DNA of 64,000 nt from Podarcis erhardii (Eukaryota): assembly GCA_964252035.1 (NCBI GenBank), contig OZ176201.1; one strand, written 5' to 3'. Of the stretch, positions 6,601-58,114 are shown in pieces (the stretch's first letter is position 1; the number at the start of each line of letters is the position of its first letter). The notes below the pieces were generated by a model. It saw nothing but the letters and a program-made list of their open reading frames with translations, searched no databases and was not told the origin of the DNA. The position numbers and the translations under genes were made by a program.

Positions 6601-6729
6601 TAATATTTGTGTCTCTCTCTTTCTAGGATGCTGCTTTATCCGGGCAATAACCATTCGCTCTCTGGTGTGGAGGCCGAGGCAGACGGTTTCATGAATATTG
6701 CACTCTGGCTGATCCAGCACTTGAAATGA
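103..6729 (+). CDS. APEH: Acylamino-acid-releasing enzyme (acylpeptide hydrolase), 3' part (exons equivalent to 11-22; 5' exons lie left of the window)
   Basis: AG/GT-bounded exons in a continuous frame: 103-163 ([20 protein letters not shown]), 1206-1303, 1679-1730, 2656-2744, 3846-3984, 4358-4441, 4529-4609 (GGPHSVF), 5177-5265 ([12 protein letters not shown]), 5394-5584 (GGSHGG nucleophile), 6091-6193, 6320-6426 (GEEDRRVP, Asp), 6627-6729 (YPGNNHSL, His; TGA). The peptide closely resembles vertebrate APEH and the Ser-Asp-His triad is intact. Confidence 0.95.
545..660 (+). mobile_element. L2-type LINE 3' tail with (TTA)n microsatellite
   Basis: gccgcccagggtggctggagcaacccagcc...ataaataataaa followed by (TTA)n at 611-659; same tail at ~16900-16960 and inverted at the window end. 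Confidence 0.55.
2985..3490 (-). mobile_element. L1-clade LINE 3' end
   Basis: Minus-strand peptide ...[23 protein letters not shown] resembles an ORF2 C-terminus; purine-rich 3' UTR and A/T tail. Confidence 0.6.
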
Positions 6730-29300: not shown

Positions 29301-32300
29301 AGAACTGTTCATTGGATGTAGCATGTGTCCCTCTAGGAGGTGCCGTTTTTTGTTGGGTTGTCCCCCAGCCCACCCTTTGTGCCATATGTAGGGCTCTGTG
29401 TATTGCCCCAGTTTGGCACCAAAACTGTACTGCTGCTTAATTTGCATTTGCAGTATGGAATTCAGCACCCTAAGAACCCTTATGGCTGAAGACAGACTTG
29501 ACTGTACATGAAAAATGCTTCCTGATATTTGAGCAGCCAGAAGAAAAGCTAAATAGGATTTCTGGAGTGTGTGTGCATAATCTCATTGTCCTTAATGGCA
29601 ACAGGGATGCCCTTGACTATATCTATAAATAGCAGAAGCCAAATAGGCATCTAGGTTCCACTGGCTTCATTTGCATGGTCTATATAGTTTTCTTGGCACA
29701 GCATTTTTATTTTTTACTTTAGTGAAAAGGCAGATTTTGGTACTTGGCTCCAGGCAAGAAGCAGGGCCTTGTTTTTGTTAGTCACGCACTCCTTCTCCTA
29801 CAGGTGCACACACCATTACTGATGTATGTGGGTGCCAAGGACCGGCGAGTGTCTCCGTACCAAGCTCTGGAATATTACCGTGTGCTGCGAGCCAGAGGTA
29901 TCCCTGTGCAGTGAGTTCTCATCCTTTGCCTTCCACATATTTGGGTTAGCAATCTTCACACTTTTGCTTGAATGGAATCCCATGCCCGGTAGCTGAGCTA
30001 TTCTCTCTTCCAGAATGTATTGAAACAATCAGTGTTTGTAGAACACAAGTCTCTCGCAAAACTAATCCAAATCTGAGAGCATGCATACTTTGAGGAGTGT
30101 GTGTGTTCCTTGTGCAATCCTTCTGTTCCCAAAACATGCCAGGACCCTTCTTCCAAGCTTTTCACATTGCATATGCATAACTGCTCTGGTTTCTCCTCAG
30201 TGTTGTTCCTTATGTTTGGCCAAGGCCTTCTCTTAAATATGGAGAGTGAACACACCAGGGAATTAAGGTTTCTCTATATTTGACTACAGTACGCTTGGAA
30301 TCACTGGCTTGGTGGCTGTTGGTGGAATAACACCCTCAGTCACTTCCACTTGATGTTCATGAAGCTTCTGAGCCCTTCCTCGGTTTGCTGCCCCATTCAT
30401 CTTGAGGTGGTGAGAGTGATTACCTTCACACCCTTCTGGAAAAGTGCATGGAATTGAATGGGGAAGCTAGAAGAGTAATGCTTCTCACTTCCTCCTGTAT
30501 ATGCTTAGACTCAGGTCAGTACCTGAGTGGCTGAATGGTAAGCAGAATAACTAAGAGGAGAGGAAAGAAAGCAATTTGGGAGTCTAGGAGGAGGACAGTG
30601 GAGCAACTGGTAGCAGGTGGAGGGAGGAGGCAGAGAGGTGAAAATTGGGTGCTGCAGGAGTCAGTAGAGAAAGAGAATTAAGTGCCAGAGAGCAAAGGCA
30701 CACACATGTATTTTCAAGTTGGATACAGTAAAATTGACCCTCTTGAAATGACATAATTTATAATTTATGACATAATTAAGCATCACCAGCATCATTGTGT
30801 ATGTCTGCATTGATTGAACCATGAAAATGACAGCTCTGGAACTTTCCAGTCCTGCCATGGCACAAAACCATGGATCCAAGGCACAGATCATCCTGGGAAT
30901 TCTAGAGGATCAGCTTTAATTCTACTGGATCTGATTTTTACCCAGACCCCATAGGAAAGCGAAGTCTCTCTCTGTGTGTGTCCGTGCATCTGTTGTGAGG
31001 GGAAATGATTTGAGAAGGTGACAAGTAGAAAAGAACAACTGGAGGGGGTGGTGCTGATGGCATTCTCTCATAATTCCAAATGTTCCCAGAGGACCAAAAA
31101 GGTTGGTGACTCCTGAGCTATGCCATCCTTGCCTCCTTTTGCCCATTGTGTCCTGCCTAAATGAGGTTTCTTATCAGGAGAAGCAGCAAGCTAACCAGTA
31201 GGTGGTGCTGGTGCTTCAGTATCTACCCTTTCAGTCAAAGGAGAGAAATTCCCTTTATGCAAAGTGTACTAGGTACACTATATTATTGCTGCTTTGATCA
31301 GTTTTCACTCAGTTAAGCAACTGTCCACACTTTGGATACTCCTTAAGATCATTTTTTGCATGTCTGTGTGGCATAGTTTCTTTTAAAATTGTAGTATCAG
31401 GAAAATGATGCAATATGTAACAGATCTAAAGTTGAACAACTCTGTATCTGGAAAGACTAGCTTCAGCATCTAACTTGCATTACAAAAGAGGCTAAATGGA
31501 CAGGTACAAGATAATCTGTTAGTGCTAGAAGCACATTATGGAGGACTTCAGCAATAAATATCTGTGGCTGGGTTGCAAGGCATCAATACCAAAGGGGGAA
31601 GTAAGGATTGAACTGAGAGTAGATATGGAAGGATAAAAGAAAACATTTCAGAGTTACTTTTCTATATGGTAGCTGTATGGACATTTTGGTCATAAATAAC
31701 AGTATAAGGCAGGGGTGGGACTTGGATGAAACTACATTTTATAATCTGTTCTGTTTTTGCTAACCTGTAAAAAAGGCCATGTACAGCTAAAGGAATTGAT
31801 TTCATATAGTGGTTTTGCCAGCCCAATGCCCACAGGAACCATGGTGCCTGCAAAGACTGTAACTGGTGCTTACAAGCAAGGTCCCCAGACTCTGAGCTGC
31901 TTCTTTTTTAAAAAATGAATGTCTCTAACCCTCCTAGAAAGAAGTTATGGAGCCAGTGTGGTGTAGTGGTTAAGAGCGGTAGTCTCGTAATCTGGGGAAC
32001 CGGGTTCGCGTCTCCGCTCCTCCACCTGCAGCTGCTGGGTGACCTTGGGCTAGTCACACTTCTTGAAGTCTCTCAGCCCCACTCACCTCACAGAGTGTTT
32101 GTTGTGGGGGAGGAAGAGAAAGGAGAATGTTAGCCGCTTTGAGACTCCTTCGGGTACTGATAAAGCGGGATATCAAATCCTCCTCCTCCTCCTCCTTCTT
32201 CTACTTCTTCTTCTTCAACTGGGGAGGTACCCTTCTAAATGATTTCTGTAAAATGAGTGAGGCTGGCTTCTCCTGCCTGTCATTGTTTCTAATTATTGAA

Positions 32301-35300: not shown

Positions 35301-35407
35301 GGCAAGTCCTAGGCTCTGTGGTTTAGACCACAGCGCCACCTGCGTACTCTTAAGAGGACTCAATTCCATGAAAGGTCCTGAATGTAGAGCCTGAGCGGAA
35401 CCAAACT

Positions 35408-35468
<61 letters not shown>

Positions 35469-38400
35469 TCTCCAAAAGCAAAAAGTTAGTACTATCTAAA
35501 AGGTCCAATCCCTGCTCAACCATACTGATTGTTCAGAATTGTGGACAACAGCAAAGGCTATCCCCAAGTATACAACCTGCTTACATATATGTTGACAGGA
35601 TTTTGTAAAGTTGAATATGATGTAGTGCCACATGTAGGAGTATGCCACTATTGCTGAAATGTGATTGGAGCATGATAGAACAGAAGTGTAGGCAGAGAAC
35701 GGGGGGCATTATATGGAGGAGCAACTGCTAGCAGCAGAAGGCAGATAAAAAGTTAAGGACTGTGGCGATCACACAGGGTCCCCGGACGTTTAACGGTCTA
35801 TTGATCCCTGTGCCACCACTGCGCTCTCTTCCCCGCTGCCACCAACCCGTTACCCTCAGGTAAAACACTGAGTCCAGACAGTTGTTAAAAGTGAACCAAA
35901 TAAACAAGTTTATTTTATAAACATTAACAAGTTTATGGTTTCTCAGATAATATTCCTTTCAGTATCTTAACTTTAGTTATCTTTACCGATCTATACCTTC
36001 CTAATACCTTCTGACTGGTTATCTCAACTGTTTGGCTGACTCCTCTTAACAAATTCTCTCACTCTCTCACATCAGACTAGCCTAACCCACAGACTTATCC
36101 TCTCTGTCTCTTCTAACTCCAGACTATCTTCTCAACCACCCTAACTCTAACTAACTCACTTCCCTTGGGTTCCCATTGGTTAGTCATTTTACAATTAGTT
36201 AACCCTTTCCTTATGAACCCAGTATGATGTCACACACCTAGGAGGGCAAATGCCACAAGGACGCAGTAGGTGGGCACAGCATTTGCTAAAGAAATGATTT
36301 TTAAAAGTCCAAAGCAATACATAGAATTATCACGACTATACAAGCATTTCATTTGTTTCTTCTTTTCATATGTGTCAATTGCTGCAATGCCTGTATTTCA
36401 AAAACAATTAATAGATAGCCTAATAGTCTGAAAACCTAAAGGTCCACAGTTGTGAGTTTGCATTAACCACAGTTTGAAAACAGTGACCCAGTGTTGTTAC
36501 CTAGGCATCATTTCAAAGATAGAGTATTAGTTAGTTTAAAATGCCATGACAAAGTGATCAAGATTCACAGGGTAATGGGGGAGGGGTGCTATTGGATTGC
36601 TGTTTTTGTTTTTATTAGGTATTTTGTGGTTTTATATCTTGATTTTATTCTGTGAACCGCCCTGAGACCCCCAGGTATAGGGTGGTATATAAATTCTAAT
36701 AATGATGATGATAATGATGATGATGATAAATTATAGAATCATTCAGTCAACCAGTGCTAGGATAAAGTTCTCTTTAAGGTGGATGAGCTGTTGAGGATCA
36801 GATTAAATTTGAGGTTTGCTTGCTTGCTGACTGGAAACTGTGGGAAGCAAAAGATTGAAGCCACCTGTCACCATACCATAGTCCCAGTCCAGCTTCCTCA
36901 TTCCCTTCAGTGTCAGCTCTTTACCTTAAAAAACACACACACCAAAAAAAGCAACCTAGGGCACTACATGACAATTATGACATTTAAAATACCTGTGATA
37001 TTTTTTAAGGCTTTGCTCCTGAAAGAATCTGGGTAGCTGCCTGCTTGAGTTTGGGATTAACAAACACCAGGAGGATACCGTGAGCAGAGGGGCACATTAG
37101 CTGCACCACTGAACACATTATTGAACCAAATCTCTGTTCTGATTTTTCATAGTATTGAAATATAAGCAATAGGTGTGCCATGTAAAAAGTGACATAAATG
37201 ATCAGGAAGGAGAGCACTGTCCCAGCTGCCTTGATATGAGCTGCTGTTTGGCGGCTCCTGAAACTGGTTCCTTTACCTGTCATATTGCAGATATGTCTGC
37301 AGAGCGAGGCTACAACCATGGTGGAGCAAAGTAAAGTCACAAGAAGGGGACAGCTTGAACCAGTAATTAAAAAGAAGAGTTGTAAAGAACTGCCAGTTTC
37401 TATCCATGAGTATCCTTGAGTCATGTTTGTTATGTTGGCTGTTGTGGTGTTCTGATGTTGCACTGAAATATTATGAAATGCATAGGCAGAAAAGAGCAAG
37501 GAGGCAGCTAGAGATACTGCAAGAAGCGAGGGCACCAGGTGTGATATCCTCAGCTTGCACCAAAGGAAGAGGGAGTGGGTGCTGTTCACTATCTTGATGC
37601 AATAGAAGACGCAGAACCAGGCAAGGAGCCAGTATCGGAAGAATATGACAGAGGCTAGAAAGACATGAATCATTCTCATCGTTATGTGGTTGAACTCCAA
37701 CTTTAAGTAGTAAGTGATTATTGCTGGAATCATCAAAACTGTGACACAGATACTGGACGTTCCCATGGACAGAAGAAGTTGTTCCTTGGCATCGAGGGTC
37801 CTGCATTTAGCCCATTCAGCAACCATCACTGCAGTTATAAAGCTATTGGAGATGAACCCACAGAGGGCCATGTCGATTACAACCACCAGAAAGGCAATGA
37901 TTTGGGAAGAAGGCATATTTCCGGATTCTTGCAGATTGCTGTCTAGGTAGTCGTTTGCCAGCCAAAGTTGTTGAGTTCAAATGGAGAGTGCAAGTGTGGT
38001 AGCAGATCAGCGACATGCTTTTTAATGCATTGGGAACTATGCAAATTAACTGTGTGTCAAACCACCAATTTCCATAATGCTTTTATCTGGGGTAGTGGTG
38101 TTGATACTAACTATATAGAAGGGCTTCCTGTCACACAACTTTGTGTGTATCAGGAATGCTGCTTCAATTTGGTGTTTATGTGAATAAGAAAGTTAGCCAT
38201 AGGCAACCCCTTTGTGGCCCAGATTTTACTGCTCACTTAAAGAATAACAGGAGCTGGAAATACTGCTGTTGAAACAAGGAATAATCCGCCTCTGTAAACT
38301 ATATTTAGAAGATGTTAGCTGGCTTGCTTGCCCTCAGGTCCCCCTCATTTTGGTTTCCAGGAACTTCACAGCCAATTCTTATATTTGCTCCCAGATCATA

Positions 38401-41400
38401 AGCAAATTCTCAGGCCCCAAACCAAAAGCTTGTACAGCCCTTGTCAGTGCACTTTACCTTCCTAGTTCCTAGCTGCTCATCTCCTCATATGCTCCCCCAA
38501 AATATTGCTTCTTCTTCATGAAAAGATGCACAATGGACGAGGCAAGCTAGAATCCAGCATGGGATGGTCATAGTAGCAGGGATGGCTCAGAGGCCTGTGG
38601 TAAAACACTCTTTTACTTTTTTAAGCTTAACCAGAAGCATTTCTACTTATTTGGAGTAGTGTATAGTTGAACTACGGAAGCATAAATTTTGGTGACCAGT
38701 TCTCAGCTGACTTACTAAATATGCTGAATGCCTATTGATGCTTAAATCAACCTCAACCCTGCTCTGTCCCGTAGGACACGCAAAATGTGAAACAAGTTTT
38801 TTTGTCAGGTGCTTTCATTTCTTCTTTTTAGTTTTAGTTTTCTTTTTAGTTTTCTTTTTAGTTTTCCCCAAAGGGCCTCAATACTTGTCATCCTGAGTAA
38901 AGAAATTTACAGTGCTCATGGATGCTGTCTATGCCAAGATCTTCTACTTATACTGAGTCAACAGACAGACACAGTCCAACTCAGTTTATTTATTGGCAGT
39001 TTTTAACACCCACCATTGAAACTTAATCCTATGAATGAATGAATGAATGAATGAACCAGGATAAAAAAACAACAACATATAAATAAAATAGCAGTTAGGA
39101 TTTTTTTTTAAACTGATAAATGTTGGAGCAAATAAGGACAAAGAAACAAGCATAGGATAAAACATCTGAATAAAATACAAGATTAAACATGGATAATGGA
39201 TGGATAAAAACTGATAATTAAAGGGGTAAAGGGGACCCCTGACCATTAGGTCCAGTCGTGGCCGACTCTGGGGTTGCGGCGCTCATCTCACTTTATTGGC
39301 CAAGGGAGCTGGCATACAGCTTCCGGGTCATGTGGCCAGCATGACTAAGCTGCTTCTGGCGAACCGGAGCAGCACACGGAAACGCCGTTTACCTTCCCGC
39401 CGGAGCGGTACCTATTTAACTACTTGCACTTTGACATGCTTTCGAACTGCTAGGTTGGCAGGAGCAGGGACCGAACAACGGGTGTTCACCCCGTCACAGG
39501 GATTCAAACCGTCGACCTTCTGATCAGCAAGTCCTAGGCTCTGTGGTTTAAATAAGGACAAAGAAACACGCATAGGCTAAAACATCTGAATAAAATACAA
39601 GATTAAACACGGATAATGGATGGATAAAAACTGATAATTTAATCCTATTACGTTATATGGGCTTATTCTTAGGTAGGCGTACATAGACATCTAGGTAATT
39701 GATGTGTTTATCTTTCAGATTACGATAGGCTTTTTTTTTATTTTGTGCAGGAAGGAGAAACCTATAGCCTCCAGATGTTTCTGAGCTACAGATCCCATCA
39801 ACTAGCTTTGTTCAGGGGCGATGGGAGGTGTAATTCAGCAATATCTGGAGGTTCACCACACCTGCTTAAAAAGCACTTAGGTTTGTTTACAACTATTTAC
39901 CGAAAGTGAAATGTAAATATGGGTCCCTGATAAAGCACAGTGTTAACTATATCCATTCTTTATTTGCATTCCTGTAATTGCCGCTGAGGATTAAGTAGAC
40001 TTAAGGTGACAGCAGATCATCTATTAACTATGAAAATAATTCCAGTTACAGATAGGTAGCCGTGTTGGTCTGCCATAGTCAAAACAAAACAAATTCCTTC
40101 CAGTAGCACCTTAAAGACCAACTAAGTCAGTTCTTGGTATGAGCTTTCGTGTGCATGCACACTTCTTCAGGTATCTGAAGAAGTGTGCATGCACACGAAA
40201 GCTCATACCAAGAACTGACTTAGTTGGTCTTTAAGGTGCTACTGGAAGGAATTTGTTTTGTTATGAAAATAATGTTAGGGAAATGTAATGGATATAATAT
40301 CCCTATTTACGCTGGATTCATCTATTTCAAAAAAGAGAGCCTTCAATACAATCGAAACCTGGGCTATACAGTGGGTCATACAAAACTGCAGATTTGACAG
40401 CAGATATAACCAGCTATTGCAAGAAAATAGGAAATAAGGCAACAGCAACATATCATCTCCACGTAAAGACCCACCCAGTACCTTTAAAAAGAGGCATAAG
40501 GCAAGAAGTTAGCTTATCACCTAAACTACACTCACCTAAGCTATTTACATTCACCTTGGAAGGTGTATTAAAAGCTGGAGTGGTAAAAAAAAAAAAAGGA
40601 ATCTGTGTTAACAGAAGATATCTAAATTTTCTATGATATGCAGGTGTTGTAATAATGAAAAGTCGACAAGAGCTACAAGAAATGCTGGAATAACTGAACA
40701 AAGAATCAAATGAAAAATAAAAATATTTCTTTAGACTCAAAAGCTAAAGTGTTCAATACAGTGGTACCTCGGGTTAAGAACTTAATTCATTCTGGAGGTC
40801 CATTCTTAACCTGAAACTGTTCTTAACCTGAGGTACCACTTTAGCTAATGGGGCCTCCCGCTGCGGCCACACGATTTCTGTTCTCATCCTGAAGCAAAGT
40901 TCTTAACCTGAGGTACTATTTCTGGGTTAGCGGAGTCTGTAACCTGAAGTGTCTGTAACCTGAAGCGTCTATAACTCGAGGTACCACTGTATGTGCATAT
41001 TAGCTGTGATGTGTTATGAAGAAGTGGACACACAAAGAAACATGAATATTTAAAGAATAATGCAACATGCCATGGGACTCACAATAATAGGAATATCATT
41101 AAAAGATTGAAAAACTAATAATTGGGTACAAGAAAGACTGAAAGTTGTGGTTGTAATGGAAAAGGCTGTGAAGCTAAAGTGGGCAGGTCATGTGTCCAGG
41201 GACGATTCAGGCCAATGGAATAAAGCAGTGTTAGTATGGTGACTCTACAGTTTTAAAAGACCCCCTATGAATTTGCTGCCAAGGAGTGTGGTGGAGTCTC
41301 CTTCTTTGGAGGTCTTTAAGCAGAGGCTTGACAACCATATGTCAGGAGTGCTCTGATGGTGTTTCCTGCTTGGCAGGGGGTTGGACTCGATGGCCCTTGT

Positions 41401-44400: not shown

Positions 44401-45787
44401 ATTAGAATACAAAGAGGGGAGGTGTGAGGAGGTCAAGGAGATTAGTTAAGAAAGGGAGTTATATTAAGGTTTAACTTGTTCTTTTGTCTTTTTTGATTGT
44501 ATCTTTTATTCTTTTTAGCTGTTTTTGCTTTTTTATTTTTTTGCTTTTTTATTTTTTTTTCTTTCTTGGATATGTTTTGTTTTTGTATATTGTGTTCTTT
44601 TTTGTAACCTTTGAAAACTTTAATAAATATTATTTGGGGGGGGGGGGAGAGAACACCCAGAAGTGCAAGCTTGATTTCGAAGGGGCAGAGGAACCACCAG
44701 AGACCAAATTGCAAACATGTGCTGGATTATGGAGAAAGCTAGAGAGTTTCAGAAAAACATCTACTTTTGCTTCATTGACTATGCAAAAGCATTTGATTGT
44801 GTTGACCGCAGCAAACTATGGCAAGTTCTTAAAGAAATGAGAGTGCCAGATCACCTCATCTGTCTCCTGAGAAATGTCTATGTGGGACAAGAAGCTACAG
44901 TTAGAACTGGATATGGAACAACTGATTGGTTCAAAATTGGGAAAGGAGTACGACAAGGCTGTATATTGTCTCCCTGCTTATTTAAGTTATATGCAGAATT
45001 CATCATGCGAAAGCCTGGGCTGGATGAATCCGAAGACGGAATTAAGATTGCTGGAAGGAATATCAACAATCTCAGATATGCTGATGACACAACATTGATG
45101 GCAGAAAGTGAGGAGGAATTAAAGAACCTTTTAATGAGGGTGAAAGAGGAGAGTGCAAAATATGGTCTGAAGCTCAACATCAAAAAAACTAAGATCATCG
45201 CCACCGGGCCCATCACCTCCTGGCAAATAGAAGGGGAAGAAATGGAGGCAGTGAGAGATTTTACTTTCTTGGGTTTCATGATCACTGCAGATGGTGACAG
45301 CAGTCACGAGATTAAAAGACACCTGCTTCTTGGGAGAAAAGCAATGACATGGAAGTTAGAGCTGGACCATAAAGAAGGCTGCTCACTGAAGAATTGATGC
45401 TTTTGAATTATGGTGCTGGAGGAGACTCTTGAGAGGCCCATGGACTGCAAGAAGATCAAACCTCTCCATTCTTAAGGAAATCAGCCCTGAGTGCTCACTG
45501 GAAGGGCAGATCGTGAAACTGAGGCTCCAATACTTTGGCCACCTCATGAGAAGAGAAAACTCCCTGGAAAAGATCCTGATGTTGGGGAAGATTGAGGGCA
45601 CAAAGAGAAGGGAACGATGGAGGACAAGATGGTTGGACAATGTTCTCAAATCTACCAACATGACTGCGGGAGGCAGTGGAAGACAGGAGTGCCTGGCGTG
45701 CTCTGGTCCATGGGGTCATGAAGAGTCGGACATGACTAAACGACTAAACAACAACATATGCAAAGATGGATGTGAAATGCTATAGAA

Positions 45788-45829
<42 letters not shown>

Positions 45830-48800: not shown

Positions 48801-51800
48801 AGAAATCTCATTCTCACAAGGTGCTGAAAATAGGGATGAGCTTGAAGCTCCTATGAAATGCAAGGAGGCACTTGGTTATGCTCCTAGGCTGAGAAACATC
48901 CAGGCCCCAGGCAATAATCAGTGGTAGTAGTATTATAAGCATTGTTTGCTTAGACACGACACTAGGTTTTTAGAAGATCAGCAACAACAAACTACTGCCT
49001 CTGGTTGAGAAGTGCTGAAACAAGTACTGGCTTATACCACAGAGCAGGCATTTCCAACTCCCAAGAGACTGTGATCTACTCCCAGTACAAAAAAACTGGC
49101 AGTGATCATTGGCATTGAGGGAGGGGGAGCTTGCGTGGGGTCGGTGGGTGGGTGAATTCCACAGAGTTGTTGAACTTTTTTGGGGGGGGGGGAGGACTGC
49201 ACAGAGTTTTTTGGCTTTCCCCCATAACTTTTTGTACACAGTCAGGATCCCGCAATCTACTAGGATCAGCCGGGGATCTATCAGTAGATCACTATCTACT
49301 GGTTGGACATCCCTGCCATAGAGGTTTTTCCTGACTTACCACAGGGACACCCTCATTCTCAGAACAAGTTCCAGCTGAACTGAGGTACTTGGTAACAATA
49401 AACTTAGAGTTCAAAGGGACCCAGAGGGTTGTTTAATCCAACCCTTCAATACAGGATTGATTGCTGCTTTAATTGATATGTTTATCTGTCAAATTAAGAT
49501 AGGTTTTTCTTTCATCAGTATCTTTAAAGGCATACATTTGTTTGCAGCTGTTTACAGAAAGGAAAATGCAAAGATGTGTGCCAGAGATAGCAGAGTGGTA
49601 AATATATCCCTTCTATATTTGCATCCCTGTGATTGCTGGTGAGGATTAAACAGGCTTGAGACAGTGCCTTTGTTTAGATTTATGAAACTTCTAATTCTTT
49701 CATTTCCTCTCTGCTTCAGTTGCCCATTGGGATGTAGATAACAACAGAACAGAAGGAAATGCAGACAATTCGTTTGACCAATATGGTTCTACATGTCTAT
49801 ACTTTTGAATAGCTGCTCTTTTTTGTATAAGTGAATATGGAAGGTCAATATCCAATCAAATGGCTCTGAACTAAAGCTCATACATCAGTCATAAGGATAA
49901 TCCCACTGCCCTGCAGATGAATAGATAGGATTGCTAATTTCTTTCTAGTCATTCATATTACTTACTCATTCCGACTAGGCATAAACATTGCCAGCAAGGT
50001 ACTCAAAAGGGCTGTTGAGATGCCTATAGCAACAAGTCGTTCATTTGAAGTTACCCAGCAGCTCCTAGTTTTTCTGCTGAAATAGACATCTCAGTAGCCC
50101 TTCTGTGTTTTGTGCAGTGCAATTTTGGGGAAGATAGCTGTGGAGTTGGAAGGTTCTCGTGGTGACTTTGCTGCCACTTATTTGGTTGATTCCCAGAGAT
50201 GCCCAAAGCCTATGCAGAAAGCTGCCCTGTCATCAACATGGCCACTTTACTGGGGAACTCCGCTCGCCCCTAACTGGTAAGGAACTTACCTGGTTCAATA
50301 GTTCTGCCTTATTAACTGTAGAGTTGGAATGTTTAGTCAGAATCTTCTTTCTTGTTATATGAATCCATTGGTTCAAGTCCTGCCCTCTGGAGCGGGAGTG
50401 GGGGGGGGAGAGAGCTTGCTTCATCTTTCATATGACAGCTGTTGAGATATTTGAAGACGGCTAGCATATCACCTCTCAGTCTCCTCTTTTCTAGGCTAAA
50501 CATACCCAGCTCCCTCAACTGTTCCCAATAAGGCTTAGTTTCCAGACCCCTAATCATCTTGGTTGCCCTCCTCTGCACACGTTCCAGCTTGTCAACATCC
50601 TTCTTAAATTGTGCCCAGAACTGGAGACAATACTCCAGGTGTGATCTGACCAAATCATAATAGAGCAGTACTCTTGACTTCCCTTGATCTGGACACCATA
50701 CTTGTGTTGATGCAGCCTAGAAGAGCATTAGCTTTTTTTGCTGCTGCATCACACTCTTGACTCATGTTACACTTGTGGTCTACTAAGACCCCTGGATCCT
50801 TTTCACATGTACTACTGGCAAGCCAGGTGTTCCTCATCTTATATTTGTGCAGCTGGTATTCCTGCCTAATTGCAGAACCTTATATTTGTCCCTACTGAAA
50901 TTCATTGTGTTAGTTTGAGCCCAGTTCTTCAATGTGTTATGGTCATACTGAATCCCAATTTTGCCTTTTGTGGCATTAGCTATCCCTCCCAGCTTGGTGT
51001 CACCTGTAAATTTGATGAGCATCCCCTCAATTCCTTCATCCAGATCTTTTATAAAGACATTGAACAACAGCGGACCTAGGACAGAACCCTGTGGCACCCC
51101 ACTGCTCACTTCTTTTTGGGATGATGAGGAACCATTAGTGAGCATTCTGGGTTCAGTAAGCCTGAGACCTGTGGGTATAGGGTGGTATATAAATCCATTA
51201 AATGAAATAAAAATCAACCCAACAGGGACTTCCGGGTTAGCGCCATCGCTTAATGGCGGATTCCCTCCGAGCTCCGGAGGGAATTGGCTCAGCAGGGGTT
51301 GGGTCATGGCGATGCGGGGACCCTAAAAAACCACAGGCGCGGAAGCCTGTGGACTTGGTGACTCGGCGGGACCATTTGCGCCCCCCCAACCTGCGAAGGA
51401 GCCTTTTTAAAGGCTACGGAACGGGGGACGGGGAGCGGCGTGGTGCTAAGAGTCCTCTGCTTCCCCTGCTGAGTGAAGCCGCATGCCATGGACGGAGAGC
51501 GCTGACTTTTTCCTGTGAACATTCAGATTAAAAGCAACAACCCGTGAGTAATACGCAAATTGGACTTAAAAGGGAAATTTTCTTTCTGAATCTGGCACGA
51601 TCGGGGAAGATGCAAAAAGGAAGTCCGTCTCCCCACCTTGTAAACAACTTAAAGCAAGGACTAAATAACTAAGGTCGAGAGAATATCTTCTTCTTTATTG
51701 AACAAAAGTTATTAATTTCACGATTGGACAGTACAAGTAATTTTGCTGGAGGATAAGAGTTGATTTTGAGAGCTGAAGTGTAACCCCCCGGGACCCGGGA

Positions 51801-54800
51801 GTGATCTGCGAGAGAGCCTGTTGGAAAGATACAGAAGACTTTGACAGCTGTCAAAATTAGCTGTCAGAGTTGGGGAATAAAAAGAAACATTGTTTTTGTT
51901 GCCTTTGCCGGTTGGATTTGCTACAATTTGGTTATAAACTGTCGAAAAACAATTTATTTTGATTTTGGGATTGGAATTAGAAGGATAGTAAGTATCCATA
52001 ATCCCTCTAGAGGGGGTTCTGGGACACTGCAAGAATGGCTGCAAGTGGAAAAATACTCATTGAGCTGAACAGGACTTTTTATCTCCTGGGAAAGCTTCAA
52101 GAACAGAGTGATATTTTGGCTACAGGGGTCATGGAACTGAATGAAACAGTAAATAATTTTACTGAAAATGGAAGGGACTTGACTCAAGTTTTTGTTCCTG
52201 AACCAAAAGCCCTTGTAGCGGAAACAAAAGTCTTTGCAGCTGAGCAGGAAAAGAAACTTGATAAATCTGAGAAAGCAGAACAAGAGATACATGATGATCT
52301 GGAGGGAAAGGAAGGAGGAGTTACAATGCTGCAGAAGGCTAAGGAAGGCCAGAGGCCTGGCAGGAAGGACATAAAGGAAAATAAGAACTGGATGATGAAG
52401 ACTTGGCCTGAATTGGAAAATGAAGAACGGAGAGACCTACCTAGATGGAGACCTGAAGACCTATGGATTACAAATTTGATTAAGATGGAAGTTGGAGCTT
52501 TTGGGACACTTAGATTCAAAAGGATTAAGAAACAAGATTTGAACTCCACTTTCGAATATAGAGGTCTGGTTAGAAGAAAAACAGACATTATCGAGACAGG
52601 GTTTCTCCGAGATTTGAGGTTTTACACAAAGGACTACCAAAAAAACTGGCAAAGAGGAACTGAGAGAGAATTGAGAGCCTCTGGTGTAAGGTCTCCGGGC
52701 TGAGAATAGATAGACTGATATATATTGGGGATTGAAACCGGGAAAGGGGGGGGGGAGTTTGGGAATCCAAAGGGTGTATAATCATATTTTGATTTCTTCT
52801 TTCTTCTATTTTGTTTTGTTATGAGGATAAAATGGGGAAACCGTGGAAGAGAACAGGGGTCGATGTTAGAAAAAGATTTTAAAGTATAAAGACTGAGGTG
52901 TATAAGGTAAAATTGGTCATATAATAAGGAACTAAATATAATAAGGAACTAAATATAATAAGGTTAAAAATTGGGGATAAGAACTTGTTGAATCAAACAT
53001 ATGGAATTGGAATACAAGAAGGGGAGGTGTGGGGAAGTCATGAAAGTATGTCATTGGAAATAAGGTTTAAAAGGTGGTTTATTTATTTTTTTTGCTCTTA
53101 TTTTGTATTTTTTGTATTTCTTGAAAGTTTTAATAAATATATCTTAAAAAAAAATAATCAACCAAACAGTTACCTTGTCCAGCCTACATTTTACTGCTTC
53201 TATACAGGAAATAATAACCAATAATAGCATAATTGATGCAACTCATGAATGCTAAATATGGAGATGTGTGATAGTAATGTGTTTGGGTTTGATTCAGCTG
53301 TTTTTCAGAAGCAGGGCTAATTTGCACGGTTTACCTTGGAAAAAATGTTGGGTGATATTTCAGAGTACATTTGGTTTGTCAGGTGACAGATCAACCCTAA
53401 TGGTAGACACACTGCTATGATTAGTACTAGATGATCGTTTCTTTCCATGTCTGTTGTGATAACTGTCTTCGTATGCAGGGAAAGTCCCTAACTCACTGAG
53501 GGTTTGAGACCCATCAACTTCCCTCACCTGGTTTAGCCAACTATTCGAAGCCATTACCAGGGTGTGGCCACAGCTGCATGCTGACAGCTTCCAGAAGCCA
53601 CAAGTGAGAGCTGAGTGCAGGGTGGGGCCCAGACATGGACAAACTACACTAGAAGGAGCACAATGTATTCCCCATCAGAGGTACTACCCCTTCCAGCAAT
53701 TCCTGAAGCCAAGCTGGTGCCAAACGTATTGCTCTGCATTCCTTTAGACTGCATCAGCAAGGCTGAAAGAGGGTCTTGTTGTCTGGGCAGCCCAGGACCT
53801 CCCTACACACTGCTCAGGCTTGCACTTTGGAGAGGTCACTTTGGTGCTGCTAACACAGCGGTTTTTCTTCATCCCAGAGGCATACTCCATTGCCTCTTGG
53901 CACTGACGGAATGCCAACAACAATGTCATAGCTGACAACACAGCTACAGATAATGAAAGGTCAGCTTCTCTATCTAACTTGTATGACAGGAGATGCAAAA
54001 TGGCCAGGCACAAGACAACCAGTTAGTGCCTTAAGTATACCAGGAAGGAGCACATTGTTAGGGTTGAGCAGAAGTGTTAGGAACTTAGGAACATTTAATA
54101 GTAGGCAAAGTGGTCTAAACCACTTGGGCTTGCCGTTCAGAAGGTCGGTGGTTCGGATCCCTGCGACGGGGTGAGCTCCCTTTGCTCAGTCCCTGCTCCT
54201 GCCAACCTAGCAGTACAAAAGCAAGTCAAAGTGCAAGTAGATTAATAGGTACCACTCCGGCGGAAAGGTAAACGGCGTTTCCGTGCGCTGCTCTGGTTTC
54301 GCCAGAAGCGGCTTAGTCATGCTGGCCACATGACCCGGAAAAACTGTCTGCGGACAAACGCCGGCTCCCTCGGCCTGTAAAGCAAGATGAGCGCAGCAAC
54401 CTCAGAGTCATTCATAACTAGACTTAACTGTCAGGGGTCCCTTTACCTTTATCTAAAGGGGAATTAAGCAAAAGCTTCTGTACTTGAGTAAGGATTAACT
54501 TAGAGAAGGAAGGGAAGAGGCAAAGAAAACATTCAAAGTTATGTTCTCATATGGTATCTGTGTAATGAAGCAAAGAGGTTTTGGTCATCGATATAGAATA
54601 TAACAGACAAAAATGACACTGCGACAATTTGGATTTTAGAATCCATTATATTTATACTAACTTGTACAGATGAGTCCATAGTCTTAATGCCATGTATCAT
54701 TGTAGCTGCGAGATTGTGTTATGCAGAATAGGTAGGGAAAGGTTTGTGGCAAAGTGGGCGACATAAATGTAGGAATATACTGTAATAAGAAGCTTAGGCA

Positions 54801-57800
54801 TTGCATAAGGGTGAAAGGAGGAGGCAAAAAATTAACAGATTTGTTCAGCATTGGAAAATGTTTCTTGATTAGTAGCCAAACCCCCCAGACACACCTTCTG
54901 GTTTTTCCTTGTGAATGTAAGGCTATGTTTTCAGAAGCATCTGCGTAGCTGCCTGCTTGAGCTTGGGATTAGCCAACAGCAGGATGGCACCCTGTGCAGG
55001 GGAGTACATTAGGATCACTGTTAGACACACTGAATAAACAAGGGTGATTCTTTCAATATTTTCAAGTACAATTATGGAATGTGCCACGTAAAAAAAAATG
55101 TAAAGGATCAGGAGGGAGAGCACTGTCCCAGCTGCCCTGACATGAGCTTTTGTTTGGAGGCTTTGAAGACTGGCTCCTTTACCTGTCATCTTGCAGACAT
55201 GTGTGTAGAGTGAGGCTACAATCACAATGGAGCACAATAAAACCACAAGAAGGGGACAGCCAGAAGCAGTCATTAAAAAAAAGCCTTGCAGAGAACGAGA
55301 AAGTTGGGTTGCTTTCTTTCCTTGAGTCACATTTGAAGTGTTGGTTGCTATGTTGCTCTGGAGCTGAAAAGAAATATGTGGGATTGTAATCAAGGAAACA
55401 AAAACCGAAAAGACTTGGGATCCCACAAGAAGCCAGGGCAGCAGCTGCGATATCCTCAGCTTGCACCAAAGGAAGAGGGTGTGGGTGCTGTTCACTATCT
55501 TGATGCAATAGAAGACGCAGAGCCAGGCAGTGAAACAAAATCGGGTGTATGAGACGAAGGTTGCAAAGAAGTAGAATATTTGAAACACTAAGCCGTTGCT
55601 TGAGTTGGTTATTAAGAAATTAGTAATGACTGCAATCTCACAGGCAGTGGCAAAGATATTGGACGTACCCAGAGAGAGAAGTAGTTGTTCACAAGTTGCA
55701 AGACTCTTGCATTGAGCCCATTCAGTGACCATCACTGCAACTATAAAACCGTTGGAGATGAGCCCACCTAGAACCCAGTCACTTGCAGCCACCAGAAATG
55801 CAATGATTTTGGAAGAAAGCATATTTCCAGATTCTTGCAGACTGCTGTACAGGTGGACTGACCAAAGTTCTTGAGTTCATGCAGCGCACAAGTGTGATGG
55901 TAGCAGATCAGCAGCATACTTTTTAATCCATTGGGAACTATGCAAATGAACTGAGCATCAAACTATGTAAATCAATGCGCTACCAAGTTCCACAAGGCTC
56001 TTATTTGGGAGAGTGGTGTTGATACAGACTGTATAGAAGGGCTTCCTGTCACACAACCTTTTGTGAATCAGGGATGTTGCTCCATTTTGGGAGTTATATG
56101 AATAAGAAAGCTTGCCACTGGCATCCACTGCAGTGGCCCAGATGTTTCTCTGCAGGGAAAAAGTGTTAGGAGATGGGGAAATGGCCCTTGAAGCAAGGAA
56201 GGAACATCAATAAATGGAATTGGAAGATACTCGTCGTCTTGCTTATACTCAGACCCCCTTAGTTTTGGTTCTCATGACTTTTTAGCCTATTACCGGTACA
56301 GTTTACTATTTTTTGGTGGCTGCTTATTTCTCTGACCCCAATCCAGCTGTTGACATCAATCTGTCGTTTTTCTTCTTTTTGAACAGATACACAATTCAAT
56401 GGCGCAGTATCAAACTTCAGCAAGTGACAGCAATGGAGTTAGCTCAGAGATCATTTTTCCATTGCACATGCTGCAGTTGCTGCTCTGCTTAAATCAGCTC
56501 CAGCTCTGCACTGACACACAGTATACTCATAATGTAGAACCAGTTTTTAATACTGTCAAATGCTTCTGTTTCTTCTATTTAGTGCAGCCAAAGGACTTCA
56601 TTGCCTGTGCCATTCAAAGTAATGTTTTCGATTGTACTCAAGGGTGTTGTTGCCATGCTAAACCTCTGAACCTTTTAAATATATATCTGCATTAAGGGAC
56701 ATAAACAGCCCAAGCTATACATCCTTGAAATTCAATCATACTATATTCAATGGGCTTACTCTATGTACAGTGTGCATATGATTACAACCTTAAATTATAG
56801 GTTTATTTGTTAAATAATTATAGGTTTTTGTTTCCTTAGTGTATTAAAAGCACACAGATTTGTTCGTTACTGTTTTCCAGGATGGAAAAAGATTTAGTGT
56901 CTTTTACTAAGTCTAGTGGTAACTATTTCTCTTTTCTTGCATCACTATACAGTGGTACCTTGGGTTACAGATACTTCAGGTTACAGACGCTTCAGGTTAC
57001 AGACGCTTCAGGTTACAGACTCTGCTAACCCAGAAATAGTACCTCGGGTTAAGAACTTTGCTTCAGGATGAGAACAGAAATTGTGCGGTGGCGGCATGGA
57101 GGCAGCAGGAGGCCCCATTAGCTAAAGTGGTACCTCAGGTGAAGAACAGTTTCAGGTTAAGAACGGACCTCCAGAACGAATTAAGTTCTTAACCCAAGGT
57201 ACCACTGTAATTGCAGCTGAGGATCAAATAGGCATAGGACAAAATCTTTTATTAGAGTCATGAAACATCTAATTCTTGCATTGCTTTTTTGCTTCATTTG
57301 CCCCTTGGGATGTGGATAACAACCTACCTAAAGGGTGGGCAGGGGAGCAAAAAATGCAAACTAGCATGTAATAAATGTGTTGTGCTTAGAACACACGGGA
57401 AATGCAATAGCACCATGTTGTCGTGCGACCTTGTTGTACATAAATCAAACTATTCAAAGTAGACAAGAGCACAGTATGATCAGAAATGTCTAACTCCAAT
57501 AAATAACAACCAACCACATGTTCCTACGAGTCAACAGACAGCACATAAAAGTGATTGCCTACCCATTCTTTCCACCTGCAGCATGCTGAGTCTGTTTCTT
57601 TCCACATGAAGGCTCCATTTAGCTATTCTGATGAATAGCCATTGATAGACCTGTCCTTCATGGTGCATCTAATCCTCTCCTAAGATCTAGGGGGGACAGC
57701 AGGTGGCTTTGAGGATGGAGCAGGTCATGGCAGACTTCAGAGGGAGATGAGGCTGTGATGGAGACAGGCCTTAGTGTCCTTACAAAGAAGGAGATGGGAC

Positions 57801-58036
57801 TGAAGGGAGTACATAGAAGCTATAGATGAGAGTCTTTGCTCATCGTAGTCCACAGGAACTTCTAAAATATAATTTTTTGTTGTTACCTTTGCAGGCTGTT
57901 GTGGTACCCAGAAGAGAATCATGCTGTAAGTGGAATGGAGGCTGAAGCAGATGTCTTTATGAACAGTGCACAGTGGATTATGCATTACCTTTCTAAGGAA
58001 GCAGACCCTGAAAGTCAGCAGCCAGCTGAGAAATAA
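9634..58036 (+). CDS. APEH-like paralog (acylamino-acid-releasing enzyme-like, S9 peptidase with beta-propeller), 22 exons, 739 aa
   Basis: Exons: 9634-9666, 9768-9900, 12892-13018, 13831-13918, 14751-14826, 15967-16103, 17035-17172, 18048-18139, 18760-18800, 19865-19986, 20366-20426, 20723-20817, 22311-22362, 23868-23956, 25486-25621, 26400-26486, 26807-26887, 27848-27936, 28726-28916, 29182-29284, 29804-29910, 57895-58036. All are AG/GT bounded with compatible phases and sum to 2220 nt. Exon sizes mirror the upstream APEH copy (61, 52, 89, 81, 89, 191, 103, 107). Motifs HGGPH, VNYRGS, GGSHGG, AKDRRV, YPEENH. Exon 1 is the least certain. Confidence 0.88.
10438..10548 (-). mobile_element. Short Penelope-like-element-derived insertion with minimal hammerhead ribozyme (10486-10523, minus)
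   Basis: 12-bp TSD catttgaactat (10426-10437 / 10549-10560); minus strand reads GTAT CTGAAGA A GTGTG CATG CACAC GAAA GC TC ATAC. Confidence 0.7.
12305..12615. mobile_element. Penelope-like-derived insertion with direct plus inverted pLTR units and hammerhead motifs
   Basis: 15-bp TSD acaagattaattctg (12290-12304 / 12616-12630). Two direct ~95-bp units followed by an inverted unit; complete hammerhead motifs at 12358-12395 (-) and 12484-12521 (+). Confidence 0.75.
16180..16570 (-). mobile_element. CR1 LINE 3' fragment
   Basis: Minus-strand peptide [32 protein letters not shown], a CR1 ORF2 C-terminus. Confidence 0.8.
16570..16960 (+). mobile_element. L2-type LINE 3' fragment with (TTA)n
   Basis: gagggccttctcggtagtggcaccc..tggaatgccctccc..gtcaaggaaataaacaac..., ending gggcgggggtataaataataaa. 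Confidence 0.6.
19245..19570. mobile_element. hAT-type MITE
   Basis: Imperfect terminal inverted repeats catggccggattta ... taaatctggcactg and internal ggccctaagcta repeats. Confidence 0.5.
20974..21010. repeat. (GT)n microsatellite
   Basis: Pure GT run. Confidence 0.95.
21555..21793. mobile_element. Tc1/mariner MITE
   Basis: TA|cagtcataccttggttctc ... gaaccaagtttccactg|TA; TA target duplication. Confidence 0.7.
23270..23560 (-). mobile_element. RTE-clade LINE 3' end with (GAA)n tail
   Basis: (CTT)n at ~23270-23328 followed by sequence homologous to 8060-8290. Confidence 0.6.
23577..23684. repeat. Two-copy 54-bp tandem duplication
   Basis: taccagttgtcggtgtttatactacagttttttagatttgcctacctacctacc repeated twice. 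Confidence 0.9.
24717..24968 (+). mobile_element. tRNA-derived squamate SINE (Squam3-like)
   Basis: gagagccagtgtggtgtagtggttaagagc (A box) ... gggttcg (B box), (CTT)n tail; near-identical to 31949-32217. Confidence 0.85.
26098..26233. mobile_element. hAT MITE
   Basis: TIR caggcatccccaaact / agtttgggggtgcctg; 8-bp TSD tcttaagg (26090-26097 / 26234-26241). Confidence 0.85.
31949..32217 (+). mobile_element. tRNA-derived squamate SINE (Squam3-like)
   Basis: Second copy of 24717-24968. Confidence 0.85.
33640..33863. mobile_element. Tc1/mariner MITE
   Basis: TA|cagtggtacctcgggtta ... ttaacccgaggtaccactg|TA; same family at 40759 and 56950. Confidence 0.85.
34200..34977 (-). mobile_element. L1-clade LINE ORF2 3' fragment
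   Basis: Minus-strand peptides [54 protein letters not shown] and [10 protein letters not shown]. Confidence 0.7.
34987..35344 (-). mobile_element. Sauria SINE (Squam1-like)
   Basis: Full-length homolog of 39220-39549 and 54095-54392; 9-bp TSD tactcttaa (34978-34986 / 35345-35353). Confidence 0.85.
35411..35466. repeat. Compound (TC)n(AC)n microsatellite
   Basis: Visible directly. Confidence 0.9.
35761..36234 (-). mobile_element. Possible solo LTR
   Basis: TG...CA ends (tgtggcg / tgtcaca), internal minus-strand AATAAA near 35910; no clear TSD. Confidence 0.4.
37005..37916 (-). CDS. Bitter taste receptor TAS2R family member (303 aa, intronless, intact)
   Basis: Seven hydrophobic segments with TAS2R motifs: FYCIKI (TM3), [14 protein letters not shown] (TM5), [20 protein letters not shown] (TM7). 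N-glycosylation sequons in ECL2 (NIS, NTT, NIT, NMT). Confidence 0.95.
   Translation of the reverse strand: MPSSQIIAFLVVVIDMALCGFISNSFITAVMVAEWAKCRTLDAKEQLLLSMGTSSICVTVLMIPAIITYYLKLEFNHITMRMIHVFLASVIFFRYWLLAWFCVFYCIKIVNSTHSLFLWCKLRISHLVPSLLAVSLAASLLFSAYAFHNISVQHQNTTTANITNMTQGYSWIETGSSLQLFFLITGSSCPLLVTLLCSTMVVASLCRHICNMTGKGTSFRSRQTAAHIKAAGTVLSFLIIYVTFYMAHLLLIFQYYEKSEQRFGSIMCSVVQLMCPSAHGILLVFVNPKLKQAATQILSGAKP
37920..38290 (-). promoter_or_regulatory. Conserved TAS2R proximal upstream module with octamer (38039-38046) and TATA-like TTAAAAA (38019-38025)
   Basis: About 350 bp homologous to 55825-56190 and 60660-61010, each directly 5' of a TAS2R start codon. Confidence 0.65.
39220..39549 (-). 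mobile_element. Sauria SINE, 5'-truncated, flanked by a 90-bp direct repeat
   Basis: Homolog of 34987-35344; flanks 39130-39219 and 39550-39639 differ at 3 positions. Confidence 0.85.
40041..40261. mobile_element. Penelope-like-derived palindromic insertion with hammerhead (40171-40208, +)
   Basis: 12-bp TSD tatgaaaataat (40029-40040 / 40262-40273); ~86-bp perfect inverted arms around a 4-nt spacer. Confidence 0.75.
40275..41250 (+). mobile_element. Degenerate RTE-like LINE reverse-transcriptase fragment, interrupted by a mariner MITE (40759-40989)
   Basis: Peptide remnants [20 protein letters not shown] and [10 protein letters not shown]; the MITE has cagtggtacctc TIRs and TA ends. Confidence 0.55.
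41250..41440 (+). mobile_element. CR1 3' end
   Basis: ...ggactcgatggcccttgtggtctattccaactctatgattctattctatgattctatg tail. Confidence 0.7.
41441..42098 (+). mobile_element. L1-clade LINE 3' end with poly(A)
   Basis: Peptide [39 protein letters not shown]; aataaa and A tail at ~42068-42097. Confidence 0.6.
42271..42562. mobile_element. Tc1/mariner MITE
   Basis: TA|cagtggtgccccgcaagac ... gtcttgcgaggcgccactg|TA; internal gcaagacgaaa repeats. Confidence 0.85.
42590..44648 (+). mobile_element. L1-derived single-ORF (HAL1-like) retroelement; ORF 43379-44041 (220 aa)
   Basis: 17-bp TSD gagaacacccagaagtg (42573-42589 / 44649-44665); GC-rich 5' UTR starting ggacttccgggttagcgccatc; L1-like 3' UTR; aataaa followed by a poly(G) tail. 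Confidence 0.75.
44695..45756 (+). mobile_element. RTE-BovB LINE 3' portion (RT fragment, ORF 44717-45397)
   Basis: [32 protein letters not shown]; 3' end gaagagtcggacatgactaaacgactaaacaac; internal deletion near 45348. Confidence 0.9.
45786..45827. repeat. (GAAA)n microsatellite
   Basis: Visible directly. Confidence 0.9.
46080..46495 (-). pseudogene. Truncated, highly decayed TAS2R relic (TM1-TM3 region)
   Basis: Minus-strand translation gives [33 protein letters not shown] and [22 protein letters not shown] match tgttcac(g)tatcttgat.caa.agaaga.gcagagc to both intact TAS2Rs. Contains stops and frameshifts. Confidence 0.75.
46532..48670 (-). mobile_element. L1-derived single-ORF (HAL1-like) retroelement; ORF 47142-47705 (187 aa)
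   Basis: 21-bp TSD cttttcagccactggttctgg (46511-46531 / 48671-48691); 5' UTR homologous to 42590 and 51226; A tail. Confidence 0.75.
50118..50290 (+). pseudogene. Decayed duplicate of APEH-like exon 19
   Basis: Matches 28790-28926: ggaaggttctcgtggtgacttt vs ggagggtctcatggtggcttt; ccctgtcatcaacatggccact.tactgggg near-identical ([10 protein letters not shown]); donor context actggtaaggaactt identical. Confidence 0.8.
50340..51150 (-). mobile_element. CR1 LINE RT / 3' fragment
   Basis: [22 protein letters not shown]; KF(T)GDTKLGG; [11 protein letters not shown]; [16 protein letters not shown]. Confidence 0.9.
51226..53155 (+). mobile_element. L1-derived single-ORF (HAL1-like) retroelement; ORF 52035-52703 (222 aa)
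   Basis: 14-bp TSD with one mismatch, aatcaacc(c/a)aacag (51212-51225 / 53156-53169); ORF shares [15 protein letters not shown] with 43379-44041; poly(A) tail. Confidence 0.75.
53430..54010 (-). mobile_element. Probable LINE (RTE-like) 5' fragment
   Basis: Recognition of a recurrent lizard repeat (ccctggtaatggcttc...caaaccctcagtgagttagggactttccctgca); not verified. Confidence 0.35.
54095..54392 (+). mobile_element. Sauria SINE
   Basis: B box ggttcggatccc; reverse complement of the 34987-35344 family; (accttt)n tail. Confidence 0.8.
54923..55822 (-). CDS. Bitter taste receptor TAS2R family member (299 aa, intronless, intact)
   Basis: Paralog of 37005-37916: [51 protein letters not shown]2 sequons NTS, NVT. 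Confidence 0.95.
   Translation of the reverse strand: MLSSKIIAFLVAASDWVLGGLISNGFIVAVMVTEWAQCKSLATCEQLLLSLGTSNIFATACEIAVITNFLITNSSNGLVFQIFYFFATFVSYTRFCFTAWLCVFYCIKIVNSTHTLFLWCKLRISQLLPWLLVGSQVFSVFVSLITIPHISFQLQSNIATNTSNVTQGKKATQLSRSLQGFFLMTASGCPLLVVLLCSIVIVASLYTHVCKMTGKGASLQSLQTKAHVRAAGTVLSLLILYIFFYVAHSIIVLENIERITLVYSVCLTVILMYSPAQGAILLLANPKLKQAATQMLLKT
55825..56190 (-). promoter_or_regulatory. Conserved TAS2R proximal upstream module with octamer (55940-55947) and TATA-like element (55920-55926)
   Basis: Homologous to 37920-38290; contains gggaactATGCAAATgaac. Confidence 0.65.
56950..57207. mobile_element. Tc1/mariner MITE inserted in the distal TAS2R upstream module
   Basis: TA|cagtggtacct ... 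aggtaccactg|TA. Confidence 0.85.
57895..58036 (+). CDS. Terminal exon (22) of the APEH-like gene carrying the catalytic His
   Basis: Acceptor gttacctttgcag|G; reads (Q)[46 protein letters not shown]. Homologous to APEH exon 6627-6729 ([27 protein letters not shown]). Phase matches exon 21 (CA|G). Too short to appear in the ORF track. Confidence 0.88.
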
Positions 58037-58114
58037 AGGATCTCAAATATTAAAAAGCAGCCAGCCTGTGGAGATACACATCATGCCACATGAAGATTGC
58101 CAGATAGAATAGAT

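Follow-up and report, generated by a model that had tools for sequence, protein, structure and literature searches.

A probable nested-gene locus in Podarcis erhardii: the predicted last exon of an APEH-like peptidase gene within an antisense bitter-taste receptor cluster

The 64,000 nucleotides of Podarcis erhardii DNA analysed here (the window) in all probability contain a true nested-gene locus, in which the His-bearing exon of an APEH-like peptidase gene lies inside a cluster of bitter-taste receptor (TAS2R) genes on the opposite strand. RNA polymerase II would have to run for about 28 kb antisense through the TAS2Rs before exon 21 could be spliced to exon 22 (position 29910 to 57895), while the TAS2Rs themselves would be ordinary single-exon units, presumably with promoters of their own. 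The proposed splice is backed by the annotation of a relative with 94-97% identity and by a skink-like spliced cDNA. The layout is an ordinary nested-gene arrangement, already present in the public annotation of related species.

The APEH-like gene and the content of its last intron

The APEH-like gene was modelled on the plus strand with the Podarcis raffonei protein XP_053233391.1 as guide. The model comprises 22 coding exons (9634-58036) for 740 amino acids; GT-AG was found at all junctions, and the frame is open throughout, without stops or frame breaks. Residues 13-740 aligned to XP_053233391.1 without gaps at 98.2% identity, and exon 1 agreed with the Podarcis N-terminus. The coding exons, together with the 3' end of the upstream APEH gene (copy 1, plus strand) as a compact comparator, are given below; a slash marks the splice boundary.

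9634-9666, 9768-9900, 12892-13018, 13831-13918, 14748-14826, plus strand: APEH-like exons 1-5
15967-16103, 17035-17172, 18048-18139, 18760-18800, 19865-19986, plus strand: APEH-like exons 6-10
20366-20426, 20723-20817, 22311-22362, 23868-23956, 25486-25621, plus strand: APEH-like exons 11-15
26400-26486, 26807-26887, 27848-27936, plus strand: APEH-like exons 16-18
28726-28916, plus strand: APEH-like exon 19 (GGSHGG, Ser)
29182-29284, plus strand: APEH-like exon 20
29804-29910, plus strand: APEH-like exon 21 (Asp), acceptor ctacag/GTG, donor CA/gtgagt
57895-58036, plus strand: APEH-like exon 22 (His), ending ...QQPAEK, TAA stop at 58034-58036
6320-6426, plus strand: exon 21 of APEH copy 1
6627-6729, plus strand: exon 22 of APEH copy 1, stop TGA

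The acceptor of APEH-like exon 22 has a good polypyrimidine tract, ttttttgttgttacctttgcag/G (ending cctttgcag/G), and the stop codon of the exon is overlapped by an AATAAA (58032-58037). Exons 21 and 22 are phase-compatible, the split codon CA+G (Gln) taking two bases from the one and one from the other. The last intron of the APEH-like gene (29911-57894) measures 27,984 bp, whereas that of APEH copy 1 (6427-6626), which has the same phase with the codon split CG/G, measures only 200 bp. The exon 19-22 peptides of both APEH copies were also searched against the whole window by tblastn at lax settings (word size 2, E up to 50). Besides the terminal exon of APEH copy 1, this search located an exon-22-like sequence at 57896-58033. 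A second such sequence for the APEH-like gene was not found in the whole window, the best chance match having E>0.8, and relics of exon 20 or exon 21 were likewise absent from it. A copy of exon 22 nearer to exon 21 was rejected on this basis. The window is without any N. A previous reading of the sequence alone had placed the end of exon 21 at 29910 (CA/gtgag), had proposed a clean in-phase terminal exon at 57895-58036 with no His exon nearer by, and had contrasted last introns of 27,984 and 200 bp. The exon 21 end proved correct to the base; acceptor, phase and TAA of the terminal exon were all confirmed, the tblastn search agreed with the absence of a nearer exon, and both intron lengths were reproduced.

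The Ser nucleophile lies in the GGSHGG motif of exon 19 and corresponds to Ser583 of the model. Asp675 and His707 are the catalytic Asp and His of mammalian APEH. The Asp in exon 21 and the His in exon 22 of the APEH-like gene align with these two residues in the solved APEH structure 7px8 (7px8_A). Pfam families on record for the ortholog XP_053233391.1 are PF19283 and PF00326 (APEH_N, Peptidase_S9). With Ser, Asp and His in place and a complete open reading frame, the gene product is a predicted acylaminoacyl-peptidase-type S9C enzyme. It resembles APEH (MEROPS S9C; 7px8) in the GGSHGG motif and in the aligned Asp and His, but differs from APEH proper in overall sequence, the two paralogs sharing about 50% identity. 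Since the His of the triad sits in exon 22, an active enzyme would need the 28-kb splice; the alignment to Asp675 and His707 upholds what had been claimed on this point.

The following features were found in the last intron and just 3' of exon 22.

37005-37916, minus strand: intact TAS2R gene 'a', 303 amino acids, nested; Pfam PF05296, E 1.4e-49
54923-55822, minus strand: intact TAS2R gene 'b', 299 amino acids, nested; Pfam PF05296, E 5.5e-52
46210-46467, minus strand: TAS2R relic in the intron, only the N-terminal ~90 codons, one stop
59830-60655, minus strand: TAS2R pseudogene just 3' of exon 22, several stops and frame breaks
50147-50287, plus strand: decayed partial copy of exon 19 in the intron, 141 bp, 77% nucleotide identity
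42270-53148: retroelement (LINE) debris in the intron, with reverse-transcriptase ORF fragments at 44717-45397 (plus strand) and 50834-51307 (minus strand)

TAS2Rs 'a' and 'b' lie wholly between the end of exon 21 (29910) and the start of exon 22 (57895), share 51% identity and cover PF05296 profile positions 1-301 and 6-301 of 303, respectively. A database record of the exact sequence of 'b' was not found. Pfam and coordinates thus bore out the earlier description of two intact TAS2R ORFs and a relic on the opposite strand, and the pseudogene described just past exon 22 was recovered at 59830-60655. Compared with P. raffonei, dN/dS was 2.3 for 'a' and 1.6 for 'b', values that were based on only 26 and 12 differences and do not demonstrate constraint. 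Other retroelement ORFs are also present in this intron.

The exon 19 relic comprises the 3' two-thirds of the exon; it contains in-frame stops and has lost the GGSHGG motif, while its donor (ctg/gtaaggaactt) is intact. P. raffonei has it too (98.6%), but the loci of other families lack it. Its identity is 77-79% to lacertid exon 19 and 73-76.5% to exon 19 of other families. Being about equally far (73-79%) from every squamate exon 19, the relic is, as judged from these values, old and neutrally evolving, although its identities do not place its exact age. It shows that part of the 3' end of the gene was once duplicated there. Exon 22 may itself have descended from a duplicate rather than from the original, which would make no difference to how it functions today.

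Use of the exon 21-22 splice

In about 15 genera of squamates, the annotated proteins run from '...RARGIPV(R/Q)' straight into 'LLWYPE.NH...'. When a representative protein library was searched with exon 19, 'acylamino-acid-releasing enzyme-like' proteins of Tiliqua scincoides and Candoia aspera were found in which '...RARGIPVR' adjoins 'LLWYPEGNH...', the Tiliqua protein ending in '...QQPAEK'. A wider protein search traced the APEH-like paralog to around twenty genera of squamates as well as to birds, amphibians and the coelacanth. Most full-length squamate models end in the same terminal exon, exons 21 and 22 are also joined in the annotated protein of a bird, and the APEH-like protein of the window is closest to those of lacertids. 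By these comparisons, exon 22 at 57895 is orthologous to the terminal exon that the APEH-like paralog has in other squamates.

Run SRR12656984 yielded a Logan contig (1161 nt) that was 92% identical to Tiliqua; its 226 contiguous encoded residues correspond to coding exons 17-22, the last six, and extend across the exon 21-22 junction. The contig joins six exons without introns and hence represents either spliced RNA or a processed copy; the intron layout of the skink-like source was assumed from its identity to Tiliqua. Lacertid cDNA across the junction was not found in a search with the C-terminal fragment. Since this search yielded genomic pieces only, it is from the relatives that we infer use of the 29910 to 57895 junction in P. 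erhardii.

The P. raffonei locus showed 94-97% nucleotide identity with the window and was collinear with it, save for discrete insertions and deletions. The last 60 residues of the APEH-like protein were identical to those of isoforms X1 and X2 of P. raffonei, which was the closest relative found. Within the NCBI range of the P. raffonei APEH-like gene, two TAS2R genes are annotated that are orthologous to 'a' (locus 37640-38551) and 'b' (locus 48269-49168), and a third TAS2R is located downstream. The orthologous last intron measures 21,031 bp in P. raffonei versus 27,984 bp here. P. raffonei has none of three retroelement (LINE-like) segments of about 2 kb each (42270-44649, 46531-48671 and 51222-53148) and no counterpart to segment 59868-60734 in the region of the downstream pseudogene; the TAS2R relic and pseudogene of the window are lacking or deleted there. 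Exon 22 was identical with P. raffonei in 142 of 142 bases, whereas the surrounding 3.6 kb showed 94.2% identity; by our own arithmetic, the chance of zero differences in 142 bases at this background is about 2 in 10,000. The contrast between exon and flanks indicates that exon 22 is under constraint (purifying selection).

The presence of the exon 19 relic between exons 21 and 22, and the annotation of isoforms without the His exon in Podarcis and Zootoca, would also fit an exon 22 orphaned from a third APEH-like copy that has decayed. In that case the gene would be a truncation that stops at 29910 and lacks the His, and the nesting would be coincidental. The relic, however, contains stops and has diverged by 23%. 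Exon 22, in contrast, is intact, in phase and preceded by a strong acceptor, and it matches P. raffonei in every base although its flanks reach about 94%. The window holds no relics of exons 20 or 21, the relic is missing from five other squamate families in which a long last intron leads to the same terminal exon, and exon 21 is joined to exon 22 in the skink-like spliced cDNA. A decayed third copy as owner of exon 22 is most unlikely and was rejected, as only a partial exon 19 relic is present and exon 22 is constrained. A misassembly that joined a TAS2R cluster into the gene over these 28 kb is barely conceivable. The interval is indeed repeat-rich, but the window is gapless, the same order is found in four other families, and the independent P. 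raffonei assembly is collinear throughout, save for the discrete insertions and deletions; mis-assembly was rejected on the strength of this collinearity. The preferred reading is that of a true nested locus with one host gene that ends in exon 22.

Distribution and history of the nesting in squamates

Loci of annotated orthologs were compared by mapping the TAS2Rs together with exons 21 and 22, with one species per lineage and two for the iguanians.

Tiliqua (Scincoidea): last intron ~48 kb; five intact TAS2R ORFs within, all antisense, four of them annotated
Elgaria (Anguimorpha): last intron ~7.5 kb; one intact TAS2R ORF within
Gekko japonicus (Gekkota): last intron ~13 kb; one frameshifted TAS2R (pseudogene) within
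Candoia (snake): last intron 6.7 kb; no detectable TAS2R
Anolis (Iguania): last intron ~560 bp; one intact TAS2R ORF 2.9 kb downstream of exon 22
Phrynocephalus (Iguania): last intron ~3.3 kb; one intact TAS2R ORF ~0.9 kb downstream of exon 22
Apteryx (bird): last intron tiny, whole gene 5.8 kb; no TAS2R, an MST1-like gene directly next

APEH and APEH-like are arranged in tandem in squamates and in a bird. The gene order is APEH, APEH-like and the opposite-strand TAS2R cluster, followed by the MST1-like gene where the locus reaches that far (snake, skink and bird). The usual squamate tree was taken as the framework for Gekkota, Scincoidea, Lacertoidea, Anguimorpha, Iguania and the snake. As nesting was observed in Gekkota, Scincoidea, Lacertoidea and Anguimorpha, an ancestral state is the simplest explanation, and nesting is probably ancestral to squamates; this placement follows from parsimony on a sample of squamates and one bird, with one species per lineage. 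In Iguania the nesting would have been lost and the intron would have shrunk, leaving only the downstream TAS2R. The snake (Candoia) would have kept the enlarged intron and lost its TAS2Rs.

In a TAS2R tree, the five nested copies of Tiliqua formed one clade with 100/100 support, which indicates that they arose by duplication inside the intron; deep forks between nested and downstream copies were left unresolved by the tree. An expansion of TAS2Rs within the host had been claimed for the locus, and this applies best to the skink with its five nested copies in one clade. In the window, TAS2Rs are located on both sides of exon 22, so that an exon within a cluster is the simplest picture: exon 22 would be embedded in a small antisense TAS2R cluster with a turnover of membership. 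The intron is a site of continuing turnover, through duplication and decay of TAS2Rs, partial duplication of exon 19 and insertion of LINEs.

Coupling of host and guests by transcriptional interference or antisense RNA, as raised in the previous reading, is speculative and was weighed separately. Read-through of the host might repress the TAS2Rs or yield antisense RNA, or TAS2R activity might truncate the host message. The antisense orientation of the TAS2Rs is kept in every species examined, and nesting is retained in four squamate lineages, as coupling would lead one to expect. In addition, a strong acceptor-like ttgcag/A is present antisense within the ORF of 'a' (37290/37291) and within that of 'b' (55196/55197). 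The reading frame that follows this site agrees with the last 10 residues of a Zootoca isoform annotated without the His exon. These acceptor-like sites and the matching tail suggest that some host transcripts may end inside a TAS2R. Against coupling, the iguanians have un-nested their TAS2R and the snake has lost it, but all of them kept an intact APEH-like gene, which indicates that neither partner needs the arrangement. TAS2R numbers also turn over freely inside the intron, and opposite-strand nesting, with short intronless genes inside long introns, is the commonest gene overlap and usually passive in origin (PMC5174743). Coupling is on balance unlikely. The stranded His exon acting as a functional switch, either by read-through that silences TAS2Rs outside taste tissue or by regulated splicing into the antisense acceptor-like sites of the TAS2R ORFs to give inactive isoforms lacking the His, is distinctly unlikely. 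A new mechanism would be at hand only if coupling of host and guests proved true.

Meaning of the locus and comparison with known nested genes

The locus is a clean and datable case of a compact gene turning into a host. The last intron is 200 bp long in APEH, tiny in the APEH-like gene of a bird and 0.56 to 48 kb long in squamates, where it varies in step with the gain and loss of TAS2R copies and with LINE insertions. For annotation the locus calls for caution, since a gene model ending at exon 21 would wrongly declare the enzyme dead. In surveys of taste receptors, one TAS2R lineage in stable synteny (APEH, APEH-like, TAS2R and, where reached, MST1-like) can also anchor orthology among squamates.

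The arrangement had been put forward as undescribed. In searches of the literature for a Tas2r-APEH pair, or for the APEH-like paralog by name, no relevant paper was found; the survey of reptile Tas2r genes in PMC5564386 gives genomic locations and tandem arrays, and the passages of it that were searched name no host genes. To this extent the claim stands. The layout is, however, visible in RefSeq annotation, and nested TAS2Rs have been published for human PRH1-PRR4.

Two RefSeq entries, which are predictions and thus database models rather than published descriptions, come closest to the window. The P. raffonei entry (XP_053233391.1) has the same host, the same terminal exon and opposite-strand TAS2Rs within the gene range; it differs in its 21-kb intron and in lacking the three LINE-like insertions and the downstream pseudogene. 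The Tiliqua scincoides entry (XP_066471875.1) likewise has the same host and terminal exon with opposite-strand TAS2Rs in the gene range, but its intron measures about 48 kb and its five nested copies derive from a lineage-specific expansion.

In humans, TAS2Rs lie inside introns of PRH1-PRR4, and their RNA-seq signal is confounded by this (PMC4466559). The likeness consists in TAS2Rs with an intronic position in a host that is unrelated to them and more broadly expressed, and whose pre-mRNA covers them. The human hosts, however, are salivary proline-rich protein genes forming a two-gene read-through, whereas the lizard host is a single enzyme gene with a stranded catalytic exon. Among nested genes generally, the commonest protein-coding overlap is that of a long host intron with a short intronless gene in opposite orientation (PMC5174743), and the nested TAS2Rs of the window share these features. 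The lizard locus differs from the usual nesting in that a small cluster with turnover of its members straddles the last exon of the host, apparently since early squamates.

Length and contents of the last intron

The last intron of the APEH-like gene (29911-57894) was compared with the otherwise collinear intron of P. raffonei. Three segments of about 2 kb had no counterpart in that species:

42270-44649, segment without P. raffonei counterpart
46531-48671, segment without P. raffonei counterpart
51222-53148, segment without P. raffonei counterpart

The introns of the two species differ in length by 7 kb, the greater part of which is due to these segments, and L1-like single-ORF elements coincide with all three. 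At 50147-50287 lies an incomplete, degenerate duplicate of the Ser exon (exon 19) that still carries an intact donor; it is common to the window and P. raffonei at 98.6% identity. Its identity to exon 19 was 73-79% in every squamate compared, and it was not found in skink, anguid, gecko, iguanian or snake loci.

The nested TAS2Rs were compared with their orthologs in the P. raffonei locus (L009), i.e. 37008-37916 with L009 37643-38551 and 54926-55822 with L009 48272-49168. The first pair gave a dN/dS of 2.3 with just 26 differences and the second 1.6 with just 12, counts too small for a test. Synonymous divergence was 0.015 and 0.009, well under the approximately 0.04-0.06 of the surrounding intron. 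The TAS2R pseudogene shortly beyond exon 22 had no counterpart in P. raffonei (missing segment 59868-60734). An intact 298-aa TAS2R lies farther downstream in that species (L009 57542-58438), at a position that falls past the end of the window.

Terminal exon of the APEH-like gene and possible alternatives

Both intact nested TAS2R ORFs carry, on the host strand, an acceptor-like ttgcag|A behind a polypyrimidine tract:

37270-37320, plus strand (antisense to TAS2R), tract and ttgcag|A in TAS2R 'a'
55175-55225, plus strand (antisense to TAS2R), tract and ttgcag|A in TAS2R 'b'

The frames that follow, YVCRARLQP and HVCRVRLQ, match RYVCRVRLQP, the C-terminal end of a Zootoca vivipara protein without the His exon (isoform X4, XP_060127527.1). 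Such a site within a TAS2R may represent a cryptic or alternative terminal exon of the host.

The stop codon of exon 22 has the same position in the window, P. raffonei, Zootoca and Lacerta agilis. Podarcis muralis RefSeq XP_028574488.1/.2 has no stop at the positions of the window's TAA (58034-58036) and TGA (58088-58090); these are replaced by E and R, giving a C-terminal extension of about 50 residues. An AATAAA at 58032-58037 overlaps the stop codon and would imply a very short 3' UTR. Its position contrasts with the longer 3' ends of the NCBI gene range in P. raffonei, extending about 5.5 kb beyond exon 22, and of the Ensembl P. muralis model, which splices from inside exon 22 to an exon matching 58423-58491.

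The corresponding intron of Tiliqua scincoides

Five intact TAS2R ORFs were present at L002 46671-69389, inside the 48-kb last intron of the Tiliqua scincoides locus. Several annotated APEH-like isoforms of this skink end in repeated non-APEH exons scattered between the TAS2Rs, with matches at:

L002 51852-52026, non-APEH terminal exon match
L002 59057-59173, non-APEH terminal exon match
L002 62483-62659, non-APEH terminal exon match

The five ORFs formed a single clade (support 100/100), which, judged from this tree, is a skink-specific TAS2R expansion within the intron.
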